A stretch of 64,000 nucleotides of DNA, taken from assembly GCF_006345805.1 (NCBI RefSeq), contig NC_043007.1, positions 67,084,001 to 67,148,000 on the forward strand. Reading direction: 5' to 3'. Source of the stretch: Octopus sinensis. Its lineage: Eukaryota. Below the pieces are notes generated by a model. It had not been told where the DNA came from. It made no database searches and was given only the letters and a program-made list of their open reading frames with translations. The stretch's first letter is position 1, and every line of letters starts with the position of its first letter. Below, one piece after another: positions 2,195 through 44,400 of this stretch. A program made the position numbers and the translations under genes.

Positions 2195-3349
2195 TCAGGT
2201 CATCCCTTAAATTTCTGTCAGAATTTTGAATAAAGAAGACAACTGTAATATTTAATTGAAATTTCATCATCAATGTACTTTCCTTGATTAATTATGACTT
2301 CCTTCCATCTGTTTACAAGCTTTTTAATCCCATCAATGTAAAACTCTTTTGGTTTCAAAGCGAAGAACTCTGAAATGTCAGTTTCAGCCTCCTCCTGGCT
2401 TGCGAAAGTTATGTCCCCAAAATGATTCTGTAAACTACAAAACAAATGGTAATCTGAAGGAGCAGGGTCGGAAGAATAAGGTGGATGAGGAATTTTTTTC
2501 CCAACCAAGATCTTCAATCTTCTGTGATGTGATCTTTGCAGTGTGGGATCACGCATTGTCCTAATGAAATATCACTCCTTATGGATTCACTAAAGCAGAT
2601 CTTTTTTTCTTCAAAGCTTGATTCAAATACTAATGCTTGAGCACTGATTGCTGCATTAGGTGGTAACAATTCAAAGTGAATTACTCCTTTGGAATCCCAC
2701 CAGATAGAGAAAAGAATCTTTTTTCCCATGAAGTTCCTTTCTCGGTTGTGGTTGAGCTTTTTCCCTTTTACCAAGCCACTGTTTACGACATTTAACATTT
2801 CGATAGAAGATCCATTTTTCATCACCAATCACAAGTCTATCCAAAAATGGTTGTTGAAGATGATGATCAACAGGTGTATGGTTTGAACTAAGCTTTATAG
2901 CCAATTCTTCAACTGACAATGCAGAATTTTCTTCAAATAATACCTCAAGGAGCTTATCAAACTCAACTGGACATCCTGTTCGATCTTCATCTTCAAAGCT
3001 GAAATCTTCACTTCTGAATTTTGCAAACCATCTTCTGCAAGTTCTTTCATTCAAGCATTCTTTCCCATAAACTGAGTGTATGTTTCAAGTCGCTTCAGCT
3101 GCAGAGTTTCCTTATTTGTACTCATAAAGCATTATGTGCCTTAAATGCTCTTTGGATACTTCCATGTTAGAAAGGGTTTTAATCAAAGAAATTTTAATTC
3201 TATTATTCTGTAAAATAATATTTAATTATTTTGAATGTACACAAATGCATAAAAATAATTTTTAATTCCATTAGACATTCTAAAATACTATTAAATTTCA
3301 TTTAATTTTTAAAAATGTAAAATCAGACAGAACTTATGGGATGACCTGA
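2195..3349 (-). mobile_element. Decayed mariner (DD34D-type) DNA transposon with terminal inverted repeats
   Basis: TIRs tcaggtcatccc...gggatgacctga; 5' TA flank. Transposase remnant from ATG 3165 (MEVSKEHLRHIMLYEYK*, GDEKW, HPPYSSDPAPSDYHLF) has stops and frameshifts. Confidence 0.93.
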
Positions 3350-3611
3350 CAGAATACTATGACTAAAGAAAGATTTGTAAGAATAATTTTAAATGAGGAG
3401 AGGGTTACAACAATAAATAAAACAAAAATAAATAGAAGTAAAAATATTAAAAATAAAATGAATAATGAACAGCAAAGAATTGGAGACATATTTTGCAAGA
3501 GTAGGGGATGAGAGGAAGAGATAAAAGAGAGAGAGACAAAGGGAAATGAAAGAGAATGGAAGGAGAAATTTAAGAATATGAATGTGGGAGAAGGTGTGGG
3601 TGTGTGTAGTG

Positions 3612-3975
3612 TGAGAGAGAGTAGATATGGAAGAGAGAGAGAGAGTAGATATGGAAGAGAGAGAGAGAGTAGATATGGAAGAGAGAGAGAGAGAGTAGAT
3701 ATGGAAGAGAGAGAGAGAGAGTAGATATGGAAGAGAGAGAGAGAGAGTAGATATGGAAGAGAGAGAGAGAGTAGATATGGAGAGAGAGAGAGAGAGTAGA
3801 TATGGAAGAGAGAGAGAGAGAGTAGATATGGAAGAGAGAGAGAGTAGATATGGAAGAGAGAGAGAGAGAAGATATGAAAGAGAGAAAGAGAAGATATGAA
3901 AGAGAGAAAGAGAAGATATGAAAGAGAGAGAGAGTAGATATGGAAGAGAGAGAGTAGATATGGAAGAGAGAAGTA
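3612..3975. repeat. Compound minisatellite (GA)n-GTAGATATGGAA
   Basis: About 15 units with variable GA tract length; it generates the spurious 278/280-aa ORFs. Confidence 0.95.
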
Positions 3976-4242
3976 GATGGAAGAGAAAATATGAGGGGAA
4001 GTATAAAGTATGAAGAATATAGAGAAAGTATGAAGAAAGGACAAAAAGAATGAGGAAAAGAGATGGATAAATAAATGAGTGAGTGATATAAAGAGAGAGA
4101 GTGAATGTATGTGAAAGTGAAATAAAAAATAAAAAATAAAAGAAAAAGAAAACAGCAACACTAACAACATCACCACATTGATGCCTTCTATTTCTATAAA
4201 GCAGTGTTGGGCAATGAGGTGGCACAGACGTGGAGGGAACTA

Positions 4243-4375: not shown

Positions 4376-7300
4376 CTGAGGAAAAAAGGCAGTCAAGGGA
4401 AAACTCAGAGGAAATCTTTATATATAAAAGTCAAGTTGTGTGTCTGTCTCCTACGATTTAGATTCCTAACTACTCCCACATTTTGCAGTGCAGTTAAACC
4501 AAAAGCGGGTATCTTATAGTCGTGATTCATATCGAGCCCTTCTGGGTATTAGCGTGCGTCTACGATGAGTCTACAATGAAAAATTTACCATAATTTTTCC
4601 GCATTTTTAATGCATTTTCGCTCGGTTTATATAAGGGAAGTAACTCTCTATAAATGCTTATATAGTTATTTCCCTTACAAACCCAATCAACGCTGGGCGA
4701 TATTGCTAGTGATGAATAAAAAACAATAATTAATAATGATGATTTTTAACATAGCCACAAGGCCATACATTTTGCAGGGATAGTTTACACTATTGTAGCG
4801 GCACAAGCAGCCAGCGCGATATTGGATGAGATCTCACGGCAGCCGTTGCCATCTCCGAGTCTGGAGCGAGACCTCACCTGCATCCATTTGCCATGCGCGA
4901 GATCACAACGAGGCTTGCGATGGAAACTATATAAAGGGAAAACCCTCTTCAAATCTCTTTTTGGCGCCACTACACAGCAGCGCTTGCTGAACATACCACT
5001 GGCTGGAGGCAATTTGCACCCGCACTATTGGAGCTTAAGGTGGTAGCTGAGAGCAGCACACTTCACCTTTCCTGTAAATAAACCAGTTGTAAATAGCAGT
5101 TGTACTTGAAGTCTTTTCTCTTCACCTGCCAGATGCCTGAACTACACGAAGAACAAAAAGATGATGGAAGAAGATGATATTCCTCCAATATCATAAACCT
5201 TGCCTTCCATTATTAAACTATTATATCTATCTCGACACTTGACGGTACTCTGAGGAACAAATGGCAAAACTAACTATTATTATAATGAATCTCACATTGA
5301 CTTAAAGCTATCTGTTTTGTACAGTTGATTGGTTCAATCACAAAATATCGCTGAACTACAGTATTTACATTTGAGGGATATTTGTCCTCATCTTGTTTGT
5401 TGTTAACATAACATTTCGGCTGATATACCCTCCAGCCTTCATCAGGTATCTTGGGGAAATTTTGAACCTGGGTTCTCATTCCTAAGGTATTTTTCGATGT
5501 TGCCATTGTTGTTGTTGTTATTATTATTATTAATAATAATAACATTATTATTCAGGTCACTGCCTGGTATTGAACTTGGAATCTTGGGGTTAGTAGCAAG
5601 CGCTCTTAACCACTATGCCATATGCCCGTGGTATAGTGGTTGAGCGCAGGCTACTAACTCCAAGATTCCGAGTTCAATACCAGGCAGTGACCTGAATAAT
5701 AATAATAATAAAAATAATAATATCAAACAACAAGATCATTTTGGTAAGAATGTTGTTCTCTTCTTGGTCCTCTAGTAAAAATGAACACCTTGACATGGTT
5801 ACTAACTCTGAGAGTGCCAAACACAAACCCTGTATGTTCTTAAGAAGAAAAAGATGACCAAATCAATAAGGTAGTAGAAAGCCAATAAAAACATTGGAAG
5901 TTCATATCCTATCATTAATAGTCTATTTGATGACGTGAACAGTCTATTTAATCAAGAGATTTGATTTGCAAGTGGCTTTCACTGACAAGTTGGAAATAAG
6001 AACTACACTATGTGGGAGCAGAGAGAGGAAGACATTCTCTTCATCTTTTACATTTGAAAATGGATAAAAACAGCATTTCAACACAGCTAATAAAAAGATA
6101 CTGGGAATGGTAGAGGGGCATCAGAGCCCGCTTTGTTCTGCTCGCATTGATGGCTGTGGCTCGGACTAGACAAGGGAGGACTTTGGAATTGACTATTGCA
6201 CCATCAAACAATGGGCCAAAATGAATCTGAAATTAAAAAGAAAACAACATTAATAATATTACTACCACTAATAATTTCCTTGCATTAACACTAATAATAA
6301 TAATAATAATCCCTTCTACTATAGGCACAAGGCCAGGAATTTGTGGGGAGGGATACAGTCAATCACATCAACCCCAGTACTTGACTGGTACTTAATTTAT
6401 TAACTCTGAAAGGAAGAAAGGCAAAGTTGACCTTGGTGGAATTTGAACTCAGAACATAGCGACAGGCAAAATATCGTTAAGCATGTCATCCAGTGTGCTA
6501 ACAATTCTGCCAGCTCACCACCTTCTTAATAACAATAATAATAATGATGATTTTGTTTTCCACAAGTATATAAAAACACAAAAACACTAACAGTAGGGGG
6601 CTACAAAAAAAATTTTAAAAAACATCTGCATGCAATTAGACTCAGAAAGTTTGTGAGGAACCCATCAACCCAATTTGCTGACTTTTCCAATGGCATGCAG
6701 GTGTCACTAAATGGTTGAATGACCAAATCCAAGCTTCTCTGATAGTTCAACAGTTACAATAAGATTTTGTTCAACCAGGGTTTGCAGGATGTCCTCATCA
6801 AGCTCTACAGATCTTCCAGGACGAGGCTCGTCTTCTAGGCTGTAGTTTCCAGCTCAGAATTTCTGGAACCCCCACTGACACAGGCTTATGTTTATTGTCC
6901 AATCCCCATATACTGCATTAATATTCCTTGCGCTTTTCATTGTGTTCCTGCCTTTATTGAACTCATAAAACAAAACGTGCCGAATATGCTCCTTTGTCAC
7001 TTCCATTATAGCTTTGAAAAAATAACTTAAAATCGAACTGCACTCTTCAAAACTTGCACTAAAAATAAGTTCACACTAAAATTACTACCTGCTTTTATAG
7101 CAAGATGATGCAGGTAGTTTATCCTGATCCCTCCAACTTTTAGTTAATGCAATTGATAAAAAAAACCACATTATTTATGGGATGACCCAATATATCTGTA
7201 TGTCTATATGTCAGTATTAGTCCCCACCTCACAGCTTGACAACCAGTGTTGGTGTGCTTATGTCCCTGTAACTTAGCAGTTCAGCAAATGAGACCGATAG

Positions 7301-10300: not shown

Positions 10301-13300
10301 TAAGTTAGTTATTCAATGAAAAGCAGCTCTTTTACATTTTACAATCCACAGAAGGCCTTTTTCATGTCCCATTCTTACCATAAGCCTGTACTGGCTGAAT
10401 CATAATTGACAAATAAATGAGTTCCTACAACCATTCTCTCTCCACAAAAACAGAACTAAAACCTTTACAGCACAGACAAGAGAAAAGAAAACAAAAATTC
10501 TGTAAAACATACACACCTTGATATGCATAGCTGCATCATTACCAGTTGGCATGCGAGTGGAAACGTGGTAAATAACTTCACATGTTGAATTAGCATAATA
10601 GGGGGCAGTCTCTCCTGTAGTCTTGTTCTGTTGCAATCCTCCAAGAAAACCAACATGTTGTTCAAGATCCACCTGTAACATACACAAAAACAGAACACCA
10701 TATTATCATTATTGTTGTTGTTATCATTATTATTCATAATAATAAGGTGGTGAAGTGGCAGAATCGTAAGCATACTGGGTGAAATGCTTAGCAGTTTTCG
10801 TCTGCCACTACATTCTGAGTTAAAATTCTGCTGAGGCCAACTTTGCCTTTCATCCTTTTGGGGTCAATAAATTAAGTACCAGTGAAACACCAGGGGTCAA
10901 TGTAATTGACTAGTCTGCTCACACCAAATTTCAGATCTTGTGCCTTTAGTAGAAATGATTATTATTATTATCATCATTAAGATGGTGAGCTGACAAAAGC
11001 ATTAGCATGCCAGGCAAAATGCTTAGCAGAATTTCACCCTTGTCACACTGTGTCACACTGAATCTCCCTGAGAACTATGTCAAAGGTACACAGGTCCGTG
11101 GAGTGCTCAGATACTTGCACGTTCATTTCATGATCAAGCTGTTCCATTGATTCTATCAGCTGGGACCCTCAGAGTACTCCTTTTCCTTCCTTATGTCATA
11201 TCTAAATGCAAGTCAAAATATTCAACGTTTTATGTCCAAACTAACCAGATCCAGCTTCTCACACCTATTCTATAAGGTCCTTCTAAAATTAAACAATCAC
11301 ATTATGAAAATCACAAAGCTACAAGATAATCCATGATTAATTCAAAACAATGTGAATAAATAGGCATAACATTTGATAAAATAATCTGAATACTAAAGGA
11401 TTAAACTTCAGCTGCCAAGAGATTTTGTGTGAATAGTAAACTGTAATAGAATCAATGTTGATGGTTTGTAGTTAAGAGCAACTAAAAGATGATGGTGAGA
11501 AAACATTTTGTGATTGATAGTAAGGATGTGATTAAACAAATATTTTAGTATCAGCTATTTAACAGATATGTGAAAGTGGTGTCTGTTCTTTTAACAAAAT
11601 TGTATAACATAAAATAAGATGCTTTGTTCAAGACTCCAATATTCCTTGATATTTTGAGAATTGTTTTTAAAGCAAGAGAATTCAGATGCTGATTATCTTG
11701 TCCTCATGCTAACCACTCAGTAAGATCTTGTAGTTTACTAGAAGTACTATTATTTAACTGTGAACAGCAGAGCAAAAAGAAACAAGATAGTGAAATACCA
11801 AACAAAAAATTGACAAATCTTGTTTTCAATGAAACATGAATGAGAAAATGTATTTGTGACAGAAGAAATCTACAAGTAGTAGTGGTGGTGGTGGTGGTGG
11901 TGGTAGCAACAGCAGTGGTGGTGGTGGTGCAACAGCAGCAGCAGTGGTGGTGGTGAAAGTAAGTGGTTGATGGGAGACCTAAGGGATAGGTGAGATACTT
12001 CAACGAAGCCTTGCAGTTAGTGAATAGAATAATCGTTTAAATGTGATCAAAAACAATTAGAAGACAAGATTTGAAATATAACATAATTATTGCTCCATGA
12101 ACCAACAATTAAATACCACACACACAAAGCCTTTTCACACATTCAACAATGATATTTAGCAAAGATTCAACATGCAATACATCTTCCTCCAAAACATTTG
12201 GCAAGTCATTAAACATATACTTACTTCCCAGCCTAAACCACTAACAAAATCTTCATAAGCTTTGCTTCCTCCACAGTTAGCAAGTATTGAGTGTTTATCT
12301 TCCTGACCTTCAGCGACATATATCACAGCAACTTTGTGGGTGTCACGGCTAGAAAATTTTTAAAATTTATATAAATTATTAACTCACATTTCGTATACTT
12401 TAATAAGAAAGAGATAATGGGATTAAAAGAGATACATATACAATATTATTCGTTACTAAAACAGAAGCATACATTGTAAAGTTCCATACATCATTAATTT
12501 ACCATAATGCCATGAAAGTTACTCCCAAAAAAATTCTCTGTAAATTATTTTTGTTTATTCTCTTCTAAGTGTTTTTTTTTATATCCATAGCCAACCTTTC
12601 AATTCTATATTTTTGAATGATTCTTTAAATCTAAACATTTACATATAACCCCCATCTAAGTGTCTTTGTTTGGTGTCTTTATTTTATAGCTGTAACAGCA
12701 TGGAAAGCTGAGTGAATAGAACAGCAGACATCAGGCTTAGAGGTTAGCAATTTATCTCCCATCACCAGTACATAACTCCCAAATGGACAAGACTGTCTAT
12801 CAGTAAACAGCTACTTCAGGGTGAAATTAACTTGGCCCTATAAACAGTGGCATCACTAAAAGTGTCCTCATTCATTCTTTGATGAAGGAATCAATATTAG
12901 CTTGTGACCATGTTAACTCAAGCACAATGTCAGGTAACTTCACAATCAATCAATAAATAAATATTATACCAAATATTTGTTTTACAATTACTCTATTGAC
13001 ATGGTTACTGAACAAAATATCAAAAGAAAAAGACAAAAAAAGAAAAAGTAAAACAGAACATAAAATGAAAAAAGTCAAGAAGAAAGAATAAAAAAACAGG
13101 CAGAGAGTAAGAAATCACAAAAAAAAAAAGCAATGAAACAAGAATGTAACAAATATATCCTAAAATAGAAACATACCATTTTTGGCTGTCCAAATTTTTC
13201 AGTTCTCGTAACAATTTGTCACTTTTCTTCAATAAATCAAAATGACATCTGCCAAAGGAAAAGAAATTCTTTAAATTAAAAAAGAAAGAAATTTCCCACA

Positions 13301-16300
13301 CCCTAGCATCATCCACATGCAATTAAGACACCTTATGCTAAACCAGCACTGGCTCCAGTTACAGAGAGCTCAGAAAAACTCTCCAAATTTGATTAAAGGA
13401 TCATACTAAACTTATTACTTTCAACAGCACAAAGACACAAGAACTATACCAAAGAAAAAAACTTAGTAATATACCATTCCACTCCCAAACATGAACAGCA
13501 CACAACAAAAACCCTCAAAGCTGCAACAAGTGTTAGACCTAATCATTACTGAGGATCTCTCTTGCTGGGCATAATAAAGGCTTCATCACTGAGACTTCAT
13601 CCCATATCAGCTATTAACCCTCTACAAAACTCAATAGACACTCACAATAGAATATTGATTTTTTGCTCCAGGAAATTTAATTTGAACACAAACAATTGCA
13701 GTGTGGAAGGTGTTTGTAAGCCATTTAAAAAACACACAAAAGCCGTTCGATTCACTTCAATATTTAAGTTTAATTTGTCAAAATATATATTCGTGCTCGG
13801 ATTTTTGTCAGTGAACAGGTCGTGGTCTTAAAGTGACGAAAATATTTTGACAAATTAAACTTAAATGTTGAAGTGAATCGAATGGCTTTTGTGTGTTTCT
13901 TAAATGGCTTACAAACACCTTCTACGCTGCAATTGTTTTTATATCAGCACACGATCTCAGATCAAATCACTTGCTATGCAAGTACATCACCATAAATCTA
14001 ATTTGAATTTGAAGTAAAACCTAAGTGTAGAACTACTAAACATAATTGCCAAAAATGCAGCTCAGAAAATCCAAAGACTCAGTTTTCAATTATGTGACAA
14101 TGTCAATAATTTTTAGTGCTTAAGTCACAAAAGTGCTAAAGTGCAATATGACAGCCTGCTACATTTGAAATGCATATCTAAAGTGGCTGAGAACCATATA
14201 CCATTAGACAAATATGGTAAAAATACCATAACCTTTCTTCAAGTATTATTATTAGTGGTGATGATGATAATTAGTTCTGAAGCCTTAGGCAAACAGAATA
14301 ACACTGTTTAGTAATCTCTAAAATATTATCTCTTCTCACCCACCCACTGACTGCATTCACAATAACAGCAACAATAACAAAAAAACTCCATCACCTTCTC
14401 TCCCAAGACAGCAGGCCCATCTGATCAAGTAGTGACCGGGAGATTTGAAATGGGGACACAGGATCTTTAATTTCAGTAGTCATCTGAGGATTAGCTACCA
14501 TACTGTAAAACGAAAACAAAAAAAAAAAAAGAAGAAAAGAAAAAGATTAATCATTTGTTTCACATTACGTACAGCTACAATAAAACTGAAAATACAGTTG
14601 AGATAAGTATAAAAAAAAGTAAAGGATGTCAGCATATGAAGAAAGTAGAAGTTAATATATGAAAAATAAAAATGGGAGGGCATATCAGCACATGAACAAT
14701 GGAGTTTGTCATGGTAGGGAGATATTAGCATATGGACAATGAAGATGAAAGGATATCAACACATGGACAATGGAAATGAGAGGGGATATCAGCATATAGA
14801 TAACAGAGATGGGAGGTAGGGTATCAATGCAATAATAATGAACATGAATTCTTTCCAAAAGAAAGATTTATCCAACCCTTTGCAGCCCTTTAAAGCTAAA
14901 GAGGCATTTCTGTTTACTGTCAGTGGTTCCTTGACATGGAGTAAACAGTTCAAATACTGTTTCATCCACGGTCAATTTCAATATCTAATGTGAGCCCTAT
15001 CATCTTAGGATAGTGGTCATGGTTTGGGGATCTAACATATAAGGTATTAAGTGGGTAGAAGTACCAAATTTTCCAGTGTTGGAATTACCTTCTGTAGCAT
15101 CAGGTGATCCACATTACTGAATAATACTATGGAGTACAGATCACAGAAGATGAGGTGTAAAGCTAGAGATGACAGCAGAACAAGAGGGGAAAAAAATAAG
15201 AATCATTTATTTACCATAACCAATCAACAAAATTAGTTCTTTTTGCTTTATATTTTACTAACAAGAAAGATGGATGTGTTTTGCCTGTCAAAAACACACA
15301 CATATGGATAGGATGGGATGGGGGGGGCTACATCTTGAGAAAGATAGGCAAAGATAAAACCAGTACAAATTATTACATGGACCTGAAAAAGTTGGATAAT
15401 GTTAGTATAATGTAAATAAACAAGGCCGAGATAAAAGATTGTCAGAGAGTAGTAGTTCTTGTATAAAGACTTTTCATATAATGATTGGTGTTTTTGGGAA
15501 GAACATGAACCATGAGTGAAAAAGAAAGAGGGTGGGGACAAAGTTAATTTAAACTAGGATGGGATGTTTGTAACAAAAACTGAAAAAGCAAAGTTTGTTC
15601 TTGTGACACTAAAAAGAAATCAAGTAGAGTCAACAAATTAAAGGTCAATTGAAACTTAGCTCACTAAGTTTTTGTACTGCTTAAGATCTCCATACACTCA
15701 GCCCAAGTTTGTACTGTAGTACCACTACAAAAGGCAGCAGCAATTGTATGCTCCTTCAGTGTTGGCCTGCAGCTCAAATCCTGACAGACCATTGTTTCTT
15801 TTGAGAGGTGACTGCCAAAGAAGCCAAAACATTACACCATGTCCACAGCCAAGACACATAACTCCCTATAACCAAATACCCCTAACTCCAAGTGCATACT
15901 GTGGGTTGGCAAACTTCACCACCATTAGCAGCAGCTACACTTTAAAAGTAACACAAGGAAAGAAATTATAATTTGTGACACAGAATGGTGTCCACCTACT
16001 AACACAGAAACCCTCCTTGTAAATTCCAAAAGTTCATAAATGGAATGATGGCTGAGTTAAAATGATAATGTTCCCAGGCTTTGTGGAAAATGAAGTGTAG
16101 AAAGCAATAATAGAATTAGGTTCAAAGTATAGTTAGAAAGTTTATGGTTGGTAGGAATAATACCGTTCTCCCTTGCATCAAAAACAACCCAGAGATACCT
16201 TTACCAATACCAACACCAATAGGCAAAATGCTCCAATATGCTACCACCAACACCAATACCATCACCAGCAGTAGTTAATAAATATTGCTGGAGGACAGAG

Positions 16301-19300
16301 AAGAACTTTAACACACTTTAATAAACTGATACTTAGAGCAACAATTCTGTGGTTTGGCACACAAGGCCATAGTTTTGTAGCTATAAAGTTACTGGATGGA
16401 GACTAGTACCATATCTAGTGCAATCTAGTACATATTTTATGAACTGTAGAGGTGAAGGAAATCATCACAAGATTTACAATCAGAATGCAGAGAGAGAGAG
16501 ACAGGGGTTGATAATGATATTGCACGCACTCATTCACACAGCTACCAGCTCCAAACCTAACAAGGATAGAAGCATATAAACAGCTCAGAAACAGCAAGCC
16601 TGATATATATTACACAATAGAAATAATGTAATAATAATAAAAGTAGTAGTAATGATAAACTTTACTACACCAAATGTCTAAAATGTGCTAGAGAAGCAAG
16701 TTCAGAAGCTAAGAAATAATGTCAATTTAGATTTAAAACTGGAATATAATTATCAAGTAAGAAACACAGTCCAATATTCTGATTGTAAATTGTTACAACG
16801 ATATACAATAGCTATTGTGAAGATATGAACAGGTTATTATTAAGTATTAAAGAAAGGAGAGCTCCAAAAATTTGTAATGTTAGGGCATGTGTTAATGCTG
16901 TAAGATGGTTCTTTCAAAACACCTCTTAGCCATTGCTACTTCTATATGTATTTTCCAAGACATGCTTAACTTTTGTATAGTATTATTGATATCAGTAAAA
17001 TACTGAAGCACTTCTATCAACCCCAAAAGGATAAAAGGCAAAGCTGACCTCAGAGGAATTTCAACTCAAAAAGTAAAGATGAACTAATTATCAGCGAGCA
17101 TTTTGTCTGGTGTGTGCTAGTGATTCTGCCAGCTCACCATCTTAATAACAATAATGTTTTTAAATTTTGCAACAAGGCCAGCAGTTTTAGGTGTTAGGGT
17201 AGTCAATTACATTGATCCCAGTGTTCAACTGATAATTATTTCACCAACCCCAAAAGGATGATGGGCCAAGTCAACCTTGGCAGCATTTGAACTCAGAACA
17301 TAAAGACAAATTACTTAGTGGCATTTTGTCCAGTGTGCTAATGAGTCTATCAGTTTACCATGGTAGTAGTAGTAATAATCCTTTCTACTATAGGCACAAG
17401 GCTTGACATTTTGGGGAAGAGAGCTAGTCAATTACATTGACCCCAGTGCTTAACTGGTACTTTTCACCAACCATGAAAGGATGAAAGGCAAAGTCAACCT
17501 TGGCAGAATTTGAACTCAGAACTTAAAGACCGACAAAATGTTTAGCAGCATTTGTCCAGCATGCTAACAATTCTGCCAGCTTGCTGTCTTAATAATAATA
17601 CTAACAACAACAATAATAATAATAATAATAATAATGATAATAATAACAACCACAACAACAATAATAATAATAATAATAATGATAATAATAACAACCACAA
17701 CAATAATAATAATTTCTGACTTAGGTTGAAAAGAGGGGCTTAATCGATTAATTGATATGACAGACCCCAGTACTTGACTGGTACATTATTTTATCAGCCC
17801 TGGGGGGATGAAAAGCAAAGCTGATCCAGACAACTTAGAGAACTGGAATAAACACAACAAAACATCTTTTCCAAAGCTCTAACAATTCTACAGGCTCAAT
17901 TTGAAATTTTGAGGAAGCAAGGAATTGGTCAATGCAATAAAGCCCAATCAGTACTTGACCAGTACTTTATTTTATCGACTGCAAAGGGATAAAATGCAAC
18001 ATTGATCTTGGTAGGATTTTGAACTCAAAGTGAAAAAAAAGCCAGGAAAAATTGCTTTGCAGCATTTGTTTCAAGTTTTTATGCACTGGGTTTTCAGCTT
18101 AATCCACCAATAATAATCATTGTAGTTTAACTGACTGGTGTAAAATGGATCTTCTTTGAAAAAGTGCTGTGTGATCTACCTAATGTATGACCTACATATA
18201 CAGATATACTGTTAGTCATAGCTGATAAAAAATTTTAAATAGAGAAATTAATACAAGAAATGATATTCCTTAAAATTCAAGTCATACACCAAACAATGAT
18301 GTATTTTTTATTCTTCAAGGAAAAAAAAGTTAAAATATACACATTATAAAAGTAAATATACAAAGATTTCAAGAGAACAAAACTGTAAAAAAGAAACAAA
18401 AAGCAGCCCCAGAAACAATAGCAAGGAGAAAGAAAATAAAAATAATCTAAATACAAGAGAAGTAAAACAGGACATTGGTAAATTTAAAAAAATAGAGTTA
18501 TCCACACACACACACAGGGTGCGGTGAGTATATTGTCGTCTAAATTACGCAAAAATGAAAATAACACTGACATCTCATTTTAAAAGACATATTTACCAAA
18601 ATTACATAAAATATCATGGAATACTAATGAGTAAATCTTCAATAAAATTGCCACTGGCTTCAACCATGGCCTCTAGATGACTTTGAAATCTCCTGCAACT
18701 CTTCTGGACAGTCTCCTTGTTTAAGTTGGTGAATGCTGCCATAATCCTTGCCTTCAGTTCATTTTTGGTGTTACCAGGAGTTTTGTTGGTCTCTCGTTCA
18801 ACTGCATCCCACACATAATAATCAAGGGGGTTGCAGTCTGGGGAGTTAGGTAGTCAGATGTTAGGGGTGATGTGGTCGCAGAAATTGTCTGACAGCCATG
18901 ACTGGGTTCTCCTGCTGGTGTGGCATGGTGCAGAGTCCTGTTGCCAGACAGGGTCTTCCAGCAGCCATCCTCTTGACTCAGGGCAGCACTACCTCCTCCA
19001 GGAGGTTGAGTCTGAAGCTGTGTGGGAAGATAAAAGGAGGCATAACATCACCATCACTAGTGATCACTCCAAACACTATGATGTTGACTGGATGTTTGAT
19101 TTTTATCACTCTCGGTACATGTTTTGGGGACATGGCACACCAACGGTTGTTCTGTGTGTTCATCATCTGTGTTTGTACTAGAGCTTCCAGTGTGAATGCC
19201 AAACAGCACAGCATGTTGTTTCCAAATTTCTAGCAGAGTGAATTGCATCACGGTACTGTTTGTCTCACAGACGGTGCCCAACTGACCATACTGTGTCGTT

Positions 19301-19390
19301 GACAAAATCAAAAACAGTGCACGTGCACGAAATTAAAAATATGAAATAGCGACAATTTAGCCATCGCATCCTTTATATATACACATATAA

Positions 19391-19423
<33 letters not shown>

Positions 19424-20258
19424 CATGTATAAAAATGCATACACACATCTTTTAGTAGTTTCAGTCATTAGATTGTGGTCATACTGGAGTACTGCCTTGA
19501 ATTTTTTAGTCAAATGAATCAACCCTAATACTTACTTTTTAAAGCCTAGTACTTATTCTATTGGTCTCTGTTGCCAAGCTGCTAAGTTACAGGGATGTAA
19601 ACACACCAACACCAGTTGTTAAGTGGTGATGGGAGAAAAAAACAGACAAAGGCACGCACACACACACACACAGATTATATCATCATCATTTAACATCCGC
19701 TTTCCATGGACAGGCTTCTTTCAGTTTCCATCTACCAAATCCACTCACAATACATATATACACACACAAACACATGAACATACATACACACACGTGTACC
19801 TACATGTTAACACATACATCTGTATACTTGCATGTTTGTGTATATGTATATACATATATATATATATAGGTGTAGATGTACTGTGTTGTAAAAACGTTTG
19901 CATCACAACTACATGGTTTCAAGTTCAGTTCCACTGCATGGTACCTTGGGCAAGTGTCTTGTACTGTAAACTCCTAGCTAACCAAAGCCTTCTGAGTAGA
20001 TTTTAGTAGACAGAAAAGGCCCAGTGTGTGTATGTATATACACACACATATATTTATATATATATATATACACAAACACATGTGAGAGTGTGTATTTTAT
20101 GTATACATATACACTAACATACACACAGTCATATTTATATATCTTTTATCCTTTACTTGCTTCAGTCAGACTGTGGCCATGCTGGAACACCACCTTGAAG
20201 AATTTTAGTTAAATGAAGCAGCCTCAGTACTTATTTTACTATATATATATATATACAC

Positions 20259-20289
<31 letters not shown>

Positions 20290-20291
20290 TT

Positions 20292-20331
<40 letters not shown>

Positions 20332-23300
20332 TTTACATATATACACACACACAAACACTATATACATCCACACACATGTATACATATATGTCCAGACATA
20401 AATATACACACACGTGTATGTAAGCAAGAATAATTATATTCATTGGCACACCACATAGGCATAAATTTCAAAATATACATAGAAATACAATGACTAAGGA
20501 AACAAAGAAGGATAGGAAGATATATGGACAAAAACAAAATAAAATATAAGGAATCCAAGAGGAATTTTTGTAATAGAGACTTGAAATATTAGCACAAAAA
20601 CTATAAAAAAAAAATCACTGTTTTACAAAACTGACAAAACCATCATAGCAGAACAAGAGGAGTAGAAAAATCAAATAAAATCAATATACATATATGTACA
20701 CACACACACTTATATACATACATGTATGTATATAATGCTTTCACGGCTTCATTTTGAAGATAGTGTGGTTGGATGAGGTGGACAAGTAGCAAAAGAAAAT
20801 AATAATAATTATAATAATAATGCAAAAGTGTAAAAAAAAATTTTAAATATTTCTACAAAGTGCAAAGAAGGAAAAATATAATAAGGAAGGATGGTGGTTA
20901 TGTTACGTGTGACACAGGCAAAAGGACCCAGAAATTAAGTGTGGCCTTAAAACAATGAAACACTTACGGTCTCTCCTCGGTTCGTCTGTACACAACAAAT
21001 GAAGTAAATCAGGCATTGCTTTATTTACAATTGAATTACATGTAACATAATAACAATAACGATTATAATAATGATAATGATGATGATGATGATGACGATG
21101 ATTTCAAATTTTGGCACAAGGCCAGCATGTTCCAGGCTGGAGATAAGTCGATTACATCGACCCCAGCATTCAACAGGTACTCATTTTATCAACTTTGGAA
21201 GGATGAAAGGCAAAGTTGACCTCAGCAGACTGAACTCAGAATGTAGCATTTTGCCCAGTGTGCTAACGATTCTGCCAATAATAATAATAATAATAATCCT
21301 TTCTAGTATAGGTACAAGGCCTGAAATTTTGGAGGAGGGGTTAAGTCAATTACATTGACTGCAGTACTCAACTAATTAATTTTTTATCGACCCTGAAAGG
21401 ATGAAAGGCAAAGTCAACCTCGGCAGAATTTGAACTCAAAATGTAAGGACTGACAAATGCTGTAAGCATTTTGCCCAGCATGCTAATGATTCTGCCAGTT
21501 CACCACCTTCAGTCATAGGCACAAGGCCTGAAATTTCGGGGGAGGGGGCCTAGTCAATTACAATGAACCCAGTGCTAGGCTGGTACTTATTTTATTGACC
21601 CCAAAAGGATTTAACTCTTTAGCATTCAGATTTCTTTGTCCAATTCATTGCATATCTATTAGTATTGTTTTGAATTAATCAGGTATTATCTTGTATCTTG
21701 TGACTAAATATTTTTATAATGACATTGTAGAGTAAGTGTGAGAGGTTGAATCTGGTCAGTTTTAACTTAAAACACGTAGAATATTTTGGCCAGATATGGC
21801 CAGTTTAAAATGCTAGAGGCTTAAGGCAAAATTGACCTCAGTGAGATTTGAACTCAGTATGTAAAGATGGACAAAATGCCATTAAGCATTTTTGTCTGGT
21901 GTACTAACAATTCTGCCAGCTCACCACCCTTAATAATAATCTGTTCAACTATACTCACAAGACCTGAAATGTTGATGTGGAGGAGGCTTGTCAATTACAG
22001 TGAGCCCAGTGCTAGGCTGGTACTTGTCAATTACATCGACCCCAAGACTTGACTGGTGCTTATTTCATTGACCCCCAAAAGGATGAAAAGCAAAATCAAT
22101 CACAGCAGAATTTTCAGCTCAGAACATAAAGCCAGATGAAAAGCCAAGCATTTTGTTTGGCATGCTAACAATTCTGCCAGCTCATCACTTTGTATTATAA
22201 AGATAATAATAACCATAGCTTCAAATTTTGGTAAAAGGCCAACAATTTAAAAGGAGCAGGCAAGTCAACTACATCAACCCCAGTGCTGAACTGCTACTTA
22301 TTTCATGAAAGACAAATCCAACCATTGCAGAATTTGAACTCAGAACACGGAGACAGGTGAAACGCTGCAAAGCATTTTGTCTGGCATGTTGACAATTCTG
22401 TCAGCTTACCACCTAATCCTTTTTTATTAAAGGCACAAGGCCTGAAATTTTGGGGGAGGGACCAGTCAATTACATTAACCCCTCAACCCCAGTGTTTCAC
22501 TAGTACTTAATTTTTCAACTCCAAAAGGATGAAAGGCAGTGTTGACCTCAGTGGAATTTGAACTTGAAACGTAAAGACTAATGAAATACCATTAAGCATT
22601 TTACCCAGCATGCTAACAATTCTGCCAGCTCACAGTCTTAATAATAATAATAATAATAATATTATCATCATTATTATTATTATTACATTTATGTATTTGT
22701 TTTGCAAGATTCCTGATGTGAAATTGTGTGTTGAAACAGATACTGTTATACTTAAGAATGGTCATCTTTTGCCAATCAATTGGCAAAGGACAACCATCCC
22801 CAAGTATAACAATAATACTAATAATGGTTTCCCATAAAGTTACAAAACCTGAAATTTTGAGGGATGGGGACAGTCAGTCAAACTGATCCCAATACTTCAG
22901 TGGTGCATTATTTCATAGACCCCTGAGGGATGAAAAGTTAAAGTTGACCTCAGAGGGATTAGGACTCAGAGCATCAGACAGAACACCTTGTGGGATCTGT
23001 TCTGGCACTTAATGCTCTAACAATTCTGCCAATCCACCACCAAATAATAATGGTTTCTGACAGACACAGGGCTTGCAGTTTTGAGGAGAGGGAGTTAGTT
23101 GATACCTTCAATTCCAGTACTTGAATAGTACCTCATTTCATCAACCTCAAATGTATGAAAGGCAAAATTGACTTTGGGGAGATTTGAAATCAAAATAAGG
23201 CACAAGGCCATAAATTCAAGGAAAGCAAACAAGTGATAAAACTGACTCCAGTACCTGATTGGTCTTTTTGCTTTTTTTAATTGATCCCAAAAAGGATGAA

Positions 23301-26300
23301 AGGCAAATTTAACCATGGAAAATTTCACACAGTTTTAGAGAAGGAACGTAGGTGGGTCAGTCAACCTCAGTAATTTGTTTTAAAATTTTTTCCCAAGGAC
23401 ATCAATATCAATAAGGGTCATAGTCACAATAGTCATTTCAGACATTTGACTGGCACAAGGCCAACTTTTGACAACATGCAACTACTTACAGCTGCTCATG
23501 ATAATGAAACAGATTTCTTACATGGAGCCACAGAGGCTTCATGTTGATAAGAGAGAAATATCAAGACTCCAGCTGCATATTTCATAATCAAAAACTCTGG
23601 GGCATTTTATTACAGCTCGACAGGTGACCCCTCTAGCCCTACTTTGTAAAAAGAAGTTGTGGAGTACCAATTTTTCAGCAATAATGATTGAGGCAATAGT
23701 AATTTTTAAGACCATTTACTTTAACCAAAACACTTTAAATTAATTTTTAGTTTACTTAAGAAATAATTATCAATTACAATATTCAATATCCAATTCTCAA
23801 TACAAAAGTTGGTAAGATACTATTGTAGATTTGTACATTATTTAAAGCAAAAAGTTTTTTACATCAAGATGCCCTTCCTATAGTTAACTATTCAATTATA
23901 AAGTCAAAATGGTACCTGTTAGCAGCTAATGAGTTTGAGACAAGGCAGAGCAAACATGAAATTTAATTATATAAAATTTGACTGGATATTTATATAAAAA
24001 AGCAGGCACAGCTGTGTGGTTAAGAAGTTTGCTTCCCAACCACATGGTTCCAGGTTCAGTCCCACTGTGTGAAATCTTGGGCAAGTATCTTCTATGTTAA
24101 CTCCAGGCCAACCAAAGCCTTGTAAACGGATTGGTAGACAGAAACTTAAAGAAGCCTTCACTAACTCATTCACTAATGGGGAGGTTAGGTTTCATTGTCT
24201 TGGCAGACATTTGCACAAATTGTTGGAGAATAAGCATCACTATCATACAAAGGGTGTCCTTTGTTTCCAATTTTCTGTGAAAACATGCCCAGTTATGGGG
24301 AAACAATACCTTATTTGGAAACAGAGAAGGGTTGGTAACAGGAAGGGCATCCAATTGTAAAAAGAAGTCTGCCTCAATGAATTATATCTTTCCCATACAA
24401 GCATGGAAAAATGGACATTAAAACAATGCTGGTGATAATAATGATACTAATATAAAATATTTCTGCAATTTTACCTTATCAGAGTAGTTACCCTTCCTAA
24501 GTCTAAACACATCATCTTTATAGTGAAAGTGGCTCTTTTAAATCAACAAAGTCAACAGAAGTTTGCTTAACACTTGATACCAAACCACCTAAGACACTTT
24601 TCTAGTTCTATAATACAAATATGTTTTAAAGATTATATTATTATAATAGAACATTTTGCCAAGTTATGCTCAAATGTCAATTCAATAATGAAAATGTTTA
24701 TCATTCCACTAAATGCCTCAAAATTCCTATTTGGAAAAATAATAGAAATAGGCAGAGTACTTCCTTAGAAGATATAGTCATAGGAGAATTATGGACATAA
24801 CAATGTCCATGGCAGGTTTTGAATTCAAAATTTGTTGGCTCAATTAACCATAACCACAGCTGACCACAACCATGGCCACTCAATCACTATGACAGCAACA
24901 AAAATTGTCAATTTAAATTTTAAAACAAAATGCCATCTTCTGTGGTTTTAAATTTGTCATTTTCAAGACATCATTTGAACAAGGTGACAAAATTTAAAGT
25001 ATAACAAGGCAGTCCACTAAAGAGAACATCCAGTCCTCAAACATAGGTGAAGACAATCAATTTCAAGAAATGGCTTTAACAAACGTCCAGTAATAGAAGC
25101 TGGTAAAAAAATGTAATAAAATCTCTTAAACTATAAAGATATACCCTCTCTATCAGCAAGTCCAGACAAACAGCATTTAGATGTGGTCCACTTGGGACCT
25201 GTAGTTAATACTAAGAAAAGTAATCAAATGTGAAATTCAAAGCAAACTAACTTAACAGAAATTACTAGATAAACCAAGAAAGTTGCATGAGGTATTGCTT
25301 ACCGTGGATCAGATTTGTGCTGGTAGTAATAATCTAGTTCTGCCTCTTTTTGTTGCAGGACTAGGTTTGTCATCATTTCCTCAGCTTGAGTGCTCAACTT
25401 CTCAGGAATTGGTGCTGCTATGTTAAGAGGTACTCCAGGCATTAGTAGGCACTCAGGACTTGCATAACCAATATACCGGAGCAGCTATAAAGATATCACA
25501 ATCATACAATAGATTTGTGCAGCTGTAGAGATATCATAATGCTTCAGCATAAAAGATACCACAATTTCACAACAATATACAAGAGCTTCTACAAAAATTT
25601 ACACCAAGTTAATGTCTGCTATACCAGAATAGCTGTAACGATGTCGAAATAAAACAACAAATATTGAAAACTAAAATACATTTTATCATCCCTACCGATC
25701 AGTATTTTACAGCTCATATTAGAAGTTTGGCATTAGATAATTAATGGACTTCAGGCCTAGTTTGATTCCAGAAAGCCTTGAAAATATTAAGTATCAAAAT
25801 AACTATAAAATCCATCTTTGCTGTCAACAGTTTTTTCCTACATTGACAGACACAATTTTTTGGCTTTTGTAATCTTTTCATTTTCACAGAGGGCCAGTTT
25901 AAGTTTTGCAAAGTTTATCTCACTTGTGTCTTAACCTTTGTGACACAATGCAACAATAGTGATGTAATATGAACCACCAACTTTTATTTTGTTATCCATG
26001 TCTCTTTTTAATTGCTATAGACTTAAATTTCTTTCGTAGAGACACAATGACTGCAAAGTTCAAATGATACTTAACTACTGTTTACAGAATGATGAGTCGA
26101 GACTTTTATAAAAACAGAAGAGCCTTCAGACAAGGACCACTTTTAGGCAGCTTGCCTTCCTTCAGCAAGTCTATATATTATTACCAATCCAGAAACAAAG
26201 TGATCAGTAGCTGATCACTTAAAAGAAAATTTAAGTATGTGCAAACCACTCCATGGATACTAACACAAGAAAACAATGTAAAAATACTATATACAAGCAA

Positions 26301-41400: not shown

Positions 41401-44400
41401 ACCGAGTCTAGTTTTCCTGCCTTCAATAGCTGGTCAACTATAAGATCCTGTAAGGTAACAAAGACAAAAACCAATTTTTAAAAAATCAGAGTCATTTATG
41501 ATAAATATTATTGTTAATAACAGTTAAGTTGATAATAGTACATAAACTTACCATTATTGATTTTAAATTTTGGCACAAGGCCAGCAATCTAGGGGAAGGG
41601 GTAAGTCATTTACATCAGTCCCAGTCTTCAACTGGTATTTATTTTATCAGCCTTAAAAGGATGAAAAGTAAAATCGATCTCGGTGTAATTTGAACTTAAG
41701 ACCATGAAATATCGCTAAGCATTTCACCCAGCATACTAATGATTCTGCCAGTTCACCACCTTAACTTACCATAAGTATATTGTTCATTATCCTCATCATC
41801 ATTTAAAGTCCACCTTCCACGCTGGCATGGGTTGGATGGTTTGACAGAAACTAGTCAGGCAGAAGACTGTACCAGACTTCTGTGTCTATTTTGGCATGGT
41901 TTTCACAAGCTGGATGCCCTTCCTAATACCAACCACCAAGCAGAATGGACTGAGTGTTTTTTATGTGGTATCAGCACAAGCAAGGTCAGTTTTCACATGG
42001 TTTTTACAACTGGATGTCCTTCCAAACACCAACCACTTTACAGTGTGGACTATTACTGAATTATCAATGGCAGTAGAATGAATATCAAGGTTGGCTTTAG
42101 CAAAGGCACTGATGCACCAAATCCATACTCTTGGGCATTTCTGTCTGAGCCAACTGCTCTACCATCACACCATCATCAATAACAACATTAACAATGTCTT
42201 TATGTTGACACAGAATTTTGGAGTAAGTAGTACAGTCGTTTTAACTGACATTACAGAGTACTTATTTTGCTTTTATCAAGCTCAACAGAATTTGAGCTGA
42301 AAGTGTAGAGGGAAAAAAATACATGCTCTAAGACTTTAATAGAAATCTTAGACAAAACTAAACATTTAGAACATTGCTCTAATTTTCTAAAACTCCATCA
42401 CATTTTTGAAACAATAACAGGAATAATTTCTTACAGAAATTTTACAGAGATAGATTAACAATGCTCAAAGTTGAACTTTGCCTTTCATCTCACTAAGATC
42501 ATTAAAATAATGTCAAGCCAGGTGCATTTTAACCATTTAGCATTCAAATTACTCTGCCAAATCTAAAGCTTATTTATTCAAACTGTTTTGAATTAATCAT
42601 GTATTGTCTCATAGCTTTGAGATTTCAATGATGTCATTGCCTAGTTTTAGAATGACATTTAGGGTAGGTGTGAGGGGCTAGATATGGCCAGTTTGAACAT
42701 AAAACAGGAAGTATATTTGGGCCAGATATGGCTGGTTTAAATGCTAAAGGATAAAACCAACAATATATCCCAATACTACAAGGTATTTTAGTTTAACTCT
42801 TTGCTAATTTTCCAACTCTTTATAGAAAAGAAAATTCTCAAAATGATTTCAAACGGGTATAAAAACAGAAGCTGGTTCTATCAACTACAGAACTTGACTG
42901 GGTACTCTGTTACCAACAATAGACAGATAAACAGCAGAGCTGACCTTAGCAGGATTTGAGCTTAGAATATGACGAGATCTAATTGAATATCACAGGAAAT
43001 TCTAACCACCACCCTACTAATTCTGTCATCCACCATTATAACAATAATGATGATGACAACGAAGATAATGGTGATGATAATAATAATAATCCTTTCTACT
43101 AAATGCACAAGGCCTGAAATTTGGCAGGAAGGGACTAGTTGATTACATCAACCCTAGTGTTTCACTGGTACTTAATTTGCTGGCCCCTGAAAGGATGAAC
43201 AATAAAGTTGAACTCAGCGGAATTTGAACTCAGAACAAAGATAGACGAAATACCGCTAAGCATTTTGTCCAGCACGGTAACAATTCTGCCAGCTCACTGC
43301 CTTAATAATAATAATAATAATAGTGGTTTTGAATTTTGGCACAAGGCCAGCAATTTCGGGGTAGGGGGATGAGTCGAATACATCAACCCCAGAAATCAAC
43401 TGGTACCTATTTTATCAACCCAGAAAAGATGAAAGGCAAAATCAACCTTGGTGAAATTTGAACTCAGAACATAAAAAACAAACGAAGTGCCACTAAGCAC
43501 TTTGTCCAGCATGTTAATGATTCTGCCAGCTCACTGCTTTAATAATAATAATAATAATAATAATAATATATAACTACCTTGAATTCATTAGCAGCTATCT
43601 GTGTACAGACCAACGTCTTGGGCTGCAACACCCGTAGATCACCAAAATGATTGGGGAAGCAAATCAACGCACCCAACAGAGCCACAGCTTCAGTTTTGGG
43701 CACCTGTGAAAGATGGTAGAGACAACAAGAGTTAATATGAAGAGAAACAAGAAAATGTACATGAGAAACAAGAAAATATACAAATGTGCATGGCAGTTTT
43801 ATAAGTGTGTTTACCTGGAAGTATGAAAGAGTGCATAAGTGTTTTGTATGCATATGCACACATGTCTAAATGTTTATTTACAGCAAAAATAAGTACACTG
43901 TTACATGTGCATAGCAACTAAAACCATAATGTTGGACCTTAAGGCTTCAGTACTAATGAGTGTACATATTTTAGTAGAAGATGAGGTTAAACACTGCGTA
44001 GTAATCCTTGACACACCACACACACACACACACACACACACATATAAATGTTAATGACCTGTAAGAACACAGTATTTAGTTATGCAACCATAATATACAA
44101 CAAAGTGTATTAAACACTTTTATAAGTCAATACTGTGTTAGCAGTGATATTACATCACTTTTTAAGGTTATCTCGACAGATTTTTTAATAAAAATTATAG
44201 CCAGCACTGACTTTGTTACAATGTTTCGTATCCCAGGTACCTGATACAAACAGTGAAATCAAAGATGAAAAATGGGTAATGGGTGCATATACCATATTTC
44301 AAGAGTTTTTGTTCCTTCATCAGCACCCATCCAACCCATTAAACATCCATGAACACACTGCATATATGGCCACTAAATATAGTGGTGTCACATTATTGAA

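Follow-up and report, generated by a model that had tools for sequence, protein, structure and literature searches.

We analysed a window of 64,000 nucleotides (nt) of Octopus sinensis DNA (NCBI RefSeq assembly GCF_006345805.1, contig NC_043007.1, positions 67,084,001 to 67,148,000 of the forward strand; the coordinates below are counted from the first letter of this window), the minus strand of which encodes the 3' part of a RalGAP-alpha gene. The element in question is an 18-nt segment within one intron of this gene, which an original prediction, made from the sequence, had put forward as a hidden, tissue-regulated and possibly neural microexon.

The RalGAP-alpha locus and its 18-nt cassette exon

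The assignment of the gene to RalGAP-alpha, already made in the original prediction, was borne out by homology. The minus strand of the window matches the PDB 9qwp_A chain from about 938 to 1899 (E 2.6e-85), the two constitutive exons flanking the 18-nt segment give a gap-free alignment with human RalGAP-alpha-2 (PDB 9qwp_A positions 1549-1645), and the Pfam Rap_GAP domain was found (1.5e-39) with its start about 80 residues past the junction. A tblastn search with the Lottia protein matched its residues 742-1974 to 23 exons of the window, the exon carrying the Asn-thumb motif RHLGND lies at about 7853, and a homology search with an alignment of the rebuilt octopus protein and full-length relatives returned O. 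sinensis isoform X5, the identity to the O. sinensis protein being 92%. Judged by this homology, the host gene encodes the catalytic alpha subunit of the RalGAP complex.

The intron between the flanking exons is exactly 10,800 nt long and interrupts the frame in phase 2. Its minus strand reads ...aatgcctgatttacttcatttgttgtgtacag/ACGAACCGAGGAGAGACC/gtaagtgtttc, with slashes at the exon borders, the upstream flank being ...tgcctgatttacttcatttgttgtgtacag, also written ...aaagcaatgcctgatttacttcatttgttgtgtacag; this read-out is identical to the earlier description of the 18-mer and its splice context. With 18 nt the segment lies within the length range of microexons (up to 27 nt), and it is bordered by cag on one side and gtaagtg on the other. 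The phase-2 arithmetic was likewise correct, the inclusion product DPR-RTEERP-MVA keeping the frame with no stop. Splicing from 25303 to 20985 and from 20968 to 14502 inserts RTEERP, and direct splicing from 25303 to 14502 omits it.

Table 1. Coordinates of the 18-nt exon, its splice sites, the flanking exons and the two parts of the intron.
Feature	Position	Strand	Remarks
Cassette microexon ACGAACCGAGGAGAGACC, 18 nt	20985..20968	minus	encodes R/RTEERP/M with split codons
5' splice site GTAAGTG	20961..20967	minus	exon side ACC off consensus
3' splice region	20986..21015	minus	AG at 20986-20987, moderate U-rich tract, CTGAT branch-like motif, UGCCUG
Upstream constitutive exon	25484..25303	minus	ends ...GAT CCA CG/gtaagc; peptide ...QHKSDP plus CG of an Arg codon
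Downstream constitutive exon	14502..14394	minus	acceptor ttttacag/T, then ATG GTA GCT
Upstream intron half, 4,317 nt	20986..25302	minus	many SINE-like repeats and microsatellites
Downstream intron half, 6,465 nt	14503..20967	minus	transposase-like remnant at 18791-19226

The 18-mer is a real microexon as had been predicted, the DPR-RTEERP-MVA product being present in O. sinensis RefSeq and the skipped isoform differing by six residues. The exact peptide ...QHKSDPRRTEERPMVANPQ... was found in XP_036363518.1 (isoform X1), X2, X5 and X8-X14, that is, RTEERP is present in 10 of the 11 isoforms listed for O. sinensis and missing from X4 (XP_036363521.1); it is the sole difference between X1 (2108 residues) and X4 (2102 residues). 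Two of the three O. vulgaris models include the insert (CAI9730076.1 and CAI9730078.1) and CAI9730077.1 skips it. The peptides of the window exons are 100% identical in the O. sinensis and O. vulgaris proteins, and not in those of O. bimaculoides. Because the O. sinensis and O. vulgaris models contain the exact peptide and occur in both forms, the 18 nt at 20968-20985 are almost certainly a genuine RalGAP-alpha cassette microexon that is alternatively used in octopus, and one that is already annotated. The exon had been called hidden and likely to be missed by gene predictors; this proved wrong, since it stands in RefSeq, the X1 isoform included, and in other public models.

RTEERP corresponds to residues 1717-1722 of O. 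sinensis RalGAP-alpha-1 X1. The catalytic Asn of RHLGND follows 159 residues further on, a spacing that is identical in the human chain. The human catalytic Asn is N1742 (PMC12311180), which therefore places the junction at about native human residues 1583/1584. The alpha-2 'delta-hug' construct deletes residues 1498-1593 (PMC12311180); the junction falls within this stretch, at the C-terminal end of the arm contacting the beta subunit (PMC12311180). The 20 residues around the junction are poorly conserved and belong to a linker some 80 residues before the Rap_GAP fold. We infer from this position that the six charged residues might tune the contact of the hug domain with the beta subunit, or the geometry of the GAP domain, rather than catalysis.

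Orthologous exons in molluscs and the chance alternative

Among the checks proposed for the octopus segment was a look at the orthologous intron in other molluscs, where the exon was found at the same junction and in the same phase. Full-length RalGAP-alpha proteins were retrieved by an exhaustive HMMER scan with the upstream exon. In Lottia gigantea XP_009063937.1 (...HKADVR-QREIEL-MLAKPE...) six extra residues stand exactly at the junction, as they did already in the 2013 JGI model, and the Lottia locus has a separate 18-nt exon of the same phase, 862 nt into a 3.1-kb intron (...ttaatgctaag/ACAAAGGGAGATAGAGCT/gtaagtgtatc). Genomic loci with the exon were also obtained for Pomacea, Haliotis and Ostrea (18 nt) and for Pecten (21 nt).

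The insert has six residues in Lottia (QREIEL), Haliotis (QLESGH or RLETGH), Gigantopelta (QTETYH), Pomacea (QVESQN), Nucella, Babylonia and Littorina (RVESWN), Mytilus (HVENVN), Dreissena (RMEDDH), Ostrea (SLELQN), Crassostrea virginica (SLEFQN) and Magallana (SLGFQK), seven in scallops (RKETLI followed by N or H) and, with various sequences, seven in Aplysia and Elysia and nine in Biomphalaria and Lymnaea. The exon is thus usually of 18 nt, with 21-27 nt in scallops and heterobranch snails, and of the 11 six-residue versions of the insert 10 have Glu as their third residue. Annotated isoforms with the exon stand beside others without it in Pomacea, Gigantopelta, Mytilus, Ostrea, Crassostrea, Dreissena, Biomphalaria and scallops, and both forms occur in Logan RNA assemblies of Magallana.

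No insert was present in three full-length Lingula isoforms, in any of six Lineus isoforms, in the single models of Owenia, Capitella, Lamellibrachia and Tubulanus, or in the amphioxus, hemichordate, fish, insect, tick, spider and Hydra isoforms examined. On present sampling, the exon appears to be mollusc-specific and older than the split of cephalopods, gastropods and bivalves. A 2026 preprint (Mantica et al.) that included O. bimaculoides inferred only two bilaterian-ancestral neural microexons, in APBB and MADD, and only four exons are common to the eMIC programmes of fly and mammals (PMC8797185). A lineage-specific exon fits this literature, because very few microexons are common across bilaterians; among the papers searched, none connects RALGAPA1 or RALGAPA2 with a microexon.

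Three further observations concern the same junction. Five Crassostrea virginica models carry a 12-residue insert, ENFQIPECQDNC, in place of SLEFQN, a hint that the same intron of the eastern oyster holds a second, alternative exon. All four models of Nymphon striatum have a 32-residue, hydrophobic and junk-looking insert (SAVLKAKVMNSFIIIIIGGVF...), probably an intron retained in the annotation. A 975-nt contig of JGI metagenome 3300021792 contains a mollusc downstream RalGAP-alpha exon (MLAKPQMPTEIEDPVSPFQMCR, caenogastropod type) whose intron agrees in position and phase; the contig represents animal DNA in a metagenome assembly. As to the microexon itself, a codon-degenerate metagenome scan for it with its splice sites gave a single match, in a bacterial-type contig of 57% GC, and this was rejected as chance.

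The alternative to a genuine exon is a chance pseudo-exon, an in-frame AG...GTAAGT pair that is never spliced. All frame-preserving, stop-free AG..GT pairs were scored with simple weight matrices, the 5' matrix being built from metazoan frequencies and the 3' matrix pooled from the acceptors of this gene. The candidate ranks first among the 230 such pairs of its intron. Pairs equally good number 4 per 64 kb on the antisense strand of the window, and Markov-simulated introns gave 0.26-1.0 of them per intron for lengths of 3-27 nt and 0.16-0.59 for 12-27 nt. A TGC occurs in the same upstream range in about 40% of the decoys and is thus uninformative, and repeats approach the acceptor to within 60 nt, which also speaks for the pseudo-exon. 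The acceptor score of 4.0 is in the middle of the range of real acceptors (-4.4 to 9.9).

Several points have to be set against a genuine exon. The donor score of 6.1 is below that of all seven real donors scored with the matrix (7.4-13.3). The octopus splice signals, taken alone, are no better than those of chance decoys. Upstream of the octopus exon stands a single UGC, UGCAUG is absent, and the AG-exclusion zone is short. The RefSeq and other models are computational, though RNA-seq-guided, and the exon is known here from such models and not from reads. The O. bimaculoides RefSeq model and the one Argonauta isoform that were retrieved have no insert; the Argonauta gene extends over 115 kb. 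Finally, the raw DNA alignment between octopus and Lottia is not robustly significant: the local alignment places the candidate at the top or tied one way, and third and dependent on scoring in reverse. Junction-anchored identity was used in its place, and with this measure no other pair matches the Lottia exon as well as the candidate, which ranks first among the 451 18-nt AG..GT pairs of the window. This rank, the exact peptide in the two Octopus species and the exons of the same phase and length at the same junction across molluscs all speak against a pseudo-exon.

So does the base composition. ACGAACCGAGGAGAGACC has a GC content of 61% against 33% locally and holds three CpGs in 18 nt, the one at the CC/GT junction counted, in an intron whose observed/expected (o/e) CpG ratio is 0.16; the real exons of the gene have a CpG o/e of 0.42. 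It is the densest CpG cluster of the intron, the only one of its 43 GC-rich patches with three CpGs, and the only isolated, single-copy, non-exon CpG cluster of the window. None of 1000 simulated introns produced equal splice scores together with at least two CpGs, and the composition likelihood ratio is only about 4. The CpG/GC island fits purifying selection. On all of this evidence, a pseudo-exon is very improbable.

One of the models without the insert deserves a separate remark. O. bimaculoides XP_052827944.1 runs from ...HKSDSR directly into LHVDDAW..., omitting both the microexon and the MVANPQ exon; LHVDDAW corresponds to an intronic open frame (window 13023-13322) before a small exon at about 13179-13250, and the protein looks like a mis-joined model.

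Other readings of the segment were tried and rejected. A tRNA-derived short interspersed element (SINE), suggested by a plus-strand GGTTCG 'B-box', gave nothing with ARAGORN and no meaningful Rfam match. Membership of a repeat was set aside, the microexon sitting in 223 bp of single-copy DNA (20823-21045) for which a search with word size 7 and nhmmer detected no second copy in the window. A 13-nt inverted repeat (20898-20910 and 21038-21050, TTATGTTACGTGT and ACATGTAACATAA) flanks the microexon, its sole mismatch being a CpG transition; as a miniature inverted-repeat transposable element or foldback element it was not significant, eight comparable repeats being present in the intron. The plus-strand 151-mer around the microexon folds with z = -3.1, the significance of which is doubtful. 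A recursive splice site does not agree with an exon start that is not GT, nor a poison exon with a segment that is in frame and has no stop. The 51-nt extension to the upstream AG contains a TGA.

The single-copy segment is enclosed by repeats: an (AAT)n tract (20798-20822) adjoins it on one side, and a multi-copy SINE-like element with a microsatellite tail lies on the other, acceptor-proximal side (21046-21400). This SINE-like dispersed family, with (AAT)n/(ATG)n tails, occupies 21099-21400 and at least 12 other sites of the window, e.g. 17154-17480, 43034-43448, 6289-6460 and 55770-56011; about 29% of the window has a match elsewhere within it. The same intron holds, at 18791-19226 (minus), a frameshifted DDE-transposase-like remnant with no Pfam match and, next to it, a second in-frame, stop-free AG..GT pair of 24 nt (18516-18539, minus, ACGACAATATACTCACCGCACCCT). 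This pair has CpGs, far weaker splice scores and a GTGTGT donor, and is found in none of the protein isoforms examined. Other introns or the 3' region contain, at 6785-6994 and 3016-3084 (minus), mariner/Mos1-type transposase remnants (Pfam HTH_48, E 4e-14 and 8e-9). The longest open reading frames of the window, 52168-53442 and 3334-4225 (424 and 280 residues), are artefacts of tandem minisatellites and not genes, one of them with a 26-residue (78-nt) period and strong GC skew. A tandem duplication of about 950 bp at 50147-51860 duplicates a pair of open reading frames (50441-50910 and 51391-51860), and CpG clusters recur in it at the same offset.

Upstream elements and candidate regulators

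In the octopus 3' splice region, a TGC lies at 21015..21013 (-30 to -28 from the acceptor) as part of a UGCCUG element at 21010-21015 (-30 to -25), and is followed by CTGAT at -27 to -23, whose A is 21009. The closest upstream AG is at -35/-34, which leaves an AG-exclusion zone of 32 nt, and the tract before the acceptor is moderate, with 70% pyrimidine and 55% T over 20 nt. The consensus GTAAGT donor, the CTGAT motif and the upstream TGC of the earlier description are all present, and only the acceptor, described there as U-rich, is moderate in this respect.

We compared the cis elements of six genomic loci (octopus, Lottia, Haliotis, Pomacea, Ostrea and Pecten). The donor is GTAAGT in all six and GTAAGTG in five, and the third codon of the exon is GAG or GAA in every locus. 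In the 60 nt upstream, 14 UGC were observed for 4.7 expected from each species' own intron (P ~4e-4), with a proximal UGC at -7 to -18 in five of the six loci, octopus being the one that has none. A single UGCAUG is located at -43, -43, -44 and -49 in Lottia, Pomacea, Ostrea and Pecten, respectively, where 0.28 was expected (P ~2e-4); in octopus and Haliotis the hexamer at the equivalent position is UGCCUG. Since UGC is enriched upstream and UGCAUG is present in four of the six mollusc orthologues, regulated splicing is plausible. For the mollusc family as a whole, a UGC-containing element may plausibly be its means. In the mechanism we infer, the short exon would be recognised through its GTAAGTG donor and the upstream UGC element (UGCAUG in most molluscs, UGCCUG in octopus), the latter being bound by a UGC-reading regulator, either SRRM234-eMIC or an Rbfox-type protein.

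Under the first of these candidates, the eMIC domain of SRRM234 would bind the upstream UGC and so bring about inclusion specifically in neurons. In eMIC exons the branch point is strong, the AG-exclusion zone and the UCUC-rich tract are long, and UGC lies near the 3' splice site (PMC8797185; PMC10551640). An exon that is short, frame-preserving and alternative, in a signalling GAP and a long exon-rich gene, would suit this class, as would the three-fold enrichment of upstream UGC over the six orthologues with its proximal copies. The bilaterian-wide programme that had been invoked is indeed ancestral to bilaterians (PMC8797185; PMC10551640), but individual microexons are seldom shared. The octopus locus itself argues the other way. 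The upstream TGC that had been taken as an eMIC signal exists, but it is at chance level, with one UGC at -30 against 0.88 expected. The AG-exclusion zone is short, the upstream region has no UCUC or CUCU motifs, and UCUC is not enriched across the six orthologues (P 0.17). Moreover, most RefSeq isoforms include the exon, which therefore need not be a rare, tissue-restricted form, and the hexamer conserved elsewhere in molluscs is UGCAUG, an Rbfox site. Neural or eMIC regulation in octopus is only weakly suggested by the sequence, and we regard neuron-specific, eMIC-driven inclusion as possible but doubtful.

UGCAUG is the motif of Rbfox proteins, whose position-dependent action is known from vertebrates and flies. 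In the second candidate mechanism, an Rbfox-type protein would act on the conserved upstream (U)GCAUG, binding there favouring skipping by analogy with vertebrates, and octopus would have lost the exact site so that inclusion became the default. The single UGCAUG at similar distances in four species would agree with this, as would the UGCCUG of octopus and Haliotis, in which most and all of the listed isoforms, respectively, include the exon. The octopus exon has no UGCAUG within 80 nt on its upstream side or 300 nt on its downstream side. The counts of RefSeq isoforms are, however, no measure of inclusion level, and the positional rule comes from vertebrates and flies rather than molluscs; an Rbfox-type control is, in our estimate, unlikely. 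The Rbfox and eMIC models cannot be told apart by sequence, because UGCAUG also contains UGC.

It could also be that the exon is effectively constitutive in octopus, and that the skipped models reflect rare or noisy skipping. The predominance of inclusion, in all but one of the listed O. sinensis isoforms and in two of three O. vulgaris models, would be expected in that case. Skipped forms were, however, annotated independently in the two Octopus species and in one Argonauta isoform, they occur in at least eight other mollusc genera, and the human and other non-mollusc proteins function without the insert. Constitutive use is therefore quite improbable, and a genuine, alternatively used exon is the reading retained below.

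Significance and comparison with known microexons

The exon was already known as annotation; its conservation throughout molluscs and the UGCAUG/UGC element upstream of it add modestly to this. Beyond RefSeq, we contribute a description of the genomic anatomy, an analysis of chance and a comparison across molluscs; genome annotation itself is unchanged, as RefSeq models of the matching species already contain the exon. Within our sampling, every major mollusc class has the microexon and no other phylum does. As a case for calibration, a true 18-nt exon was picked from a 10.8-kb intron by reading the raw sequence, despite splice statistics at chance level. The features that pointed in the right direction were the isolated CpG/GC island in a CpG-depleted intron and the concordance of length and phase across species.

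Only tentatively, and as a reading that we hold to be possible rather than probable, we propose a mollusc-specific microexon of Cambrian age at the edge of the hug domain, alternative in cephalopods, gastropods and bivalves and controlled through UGCAUG/UGC by Rbfox and/or SRRM234-eMIC. In octopus, it would form a tissue-regulated, possibly neural switch tuning the alpha/beta contact and Ral signalling. If true, this would be a clean invertebrate case of an ancient microexon that is confined to one lineage and whose regulatory element can be traced. Because the Glu of the mollusc-wide exon is conserved, as is the position of the upstream UGCAUG/UGC element, the exon offers a tractable case for studying the wiring of lineage-specific microexon programmes in animals other than vertebrates and insects, and for asking if the hug domain of RalGAP serves as a regulated interface.

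Compared with the X1 and X4 isoforms of O. sinensis RalGAP alpha-1, the exon is the same one, with RTEERP at the same junction and no difference. With the neural microexons of SRRM3/4 (eMIC) in vertebrates and Drosophila it shares a length within 3-27 nt, the preservation of the frame, alternative use and a location at a domain edge of a signalling protein, as well as, across mollusc orthologues, the enrichment of upstream UGC. It differs from them in that octopus has no proximal UGC, long AG-exclusion zone or UCUC-rich tract, and in that the RalGAP-alpha exon is restricted to molluscs and found neither in vertebrates nor in insects. The likeness to Rbfox-regulated cassette exons lies in the single UGCAUG at a fixed upstream distance in four of the six mollusc orthologues, octopus differing by UGCCUG in its place. 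The microexons of APBB1/2/3 and MADD are likewise short and in frame, and have stayed at one place in the protein for hundreds of millions of years; those are inferred to be bilaterian-ancestral, whereas the octopus type of exon is found in molluscs only, its length drifts (18, 21 and 27 nt) and it has only one well-conserved residue, Glu3.

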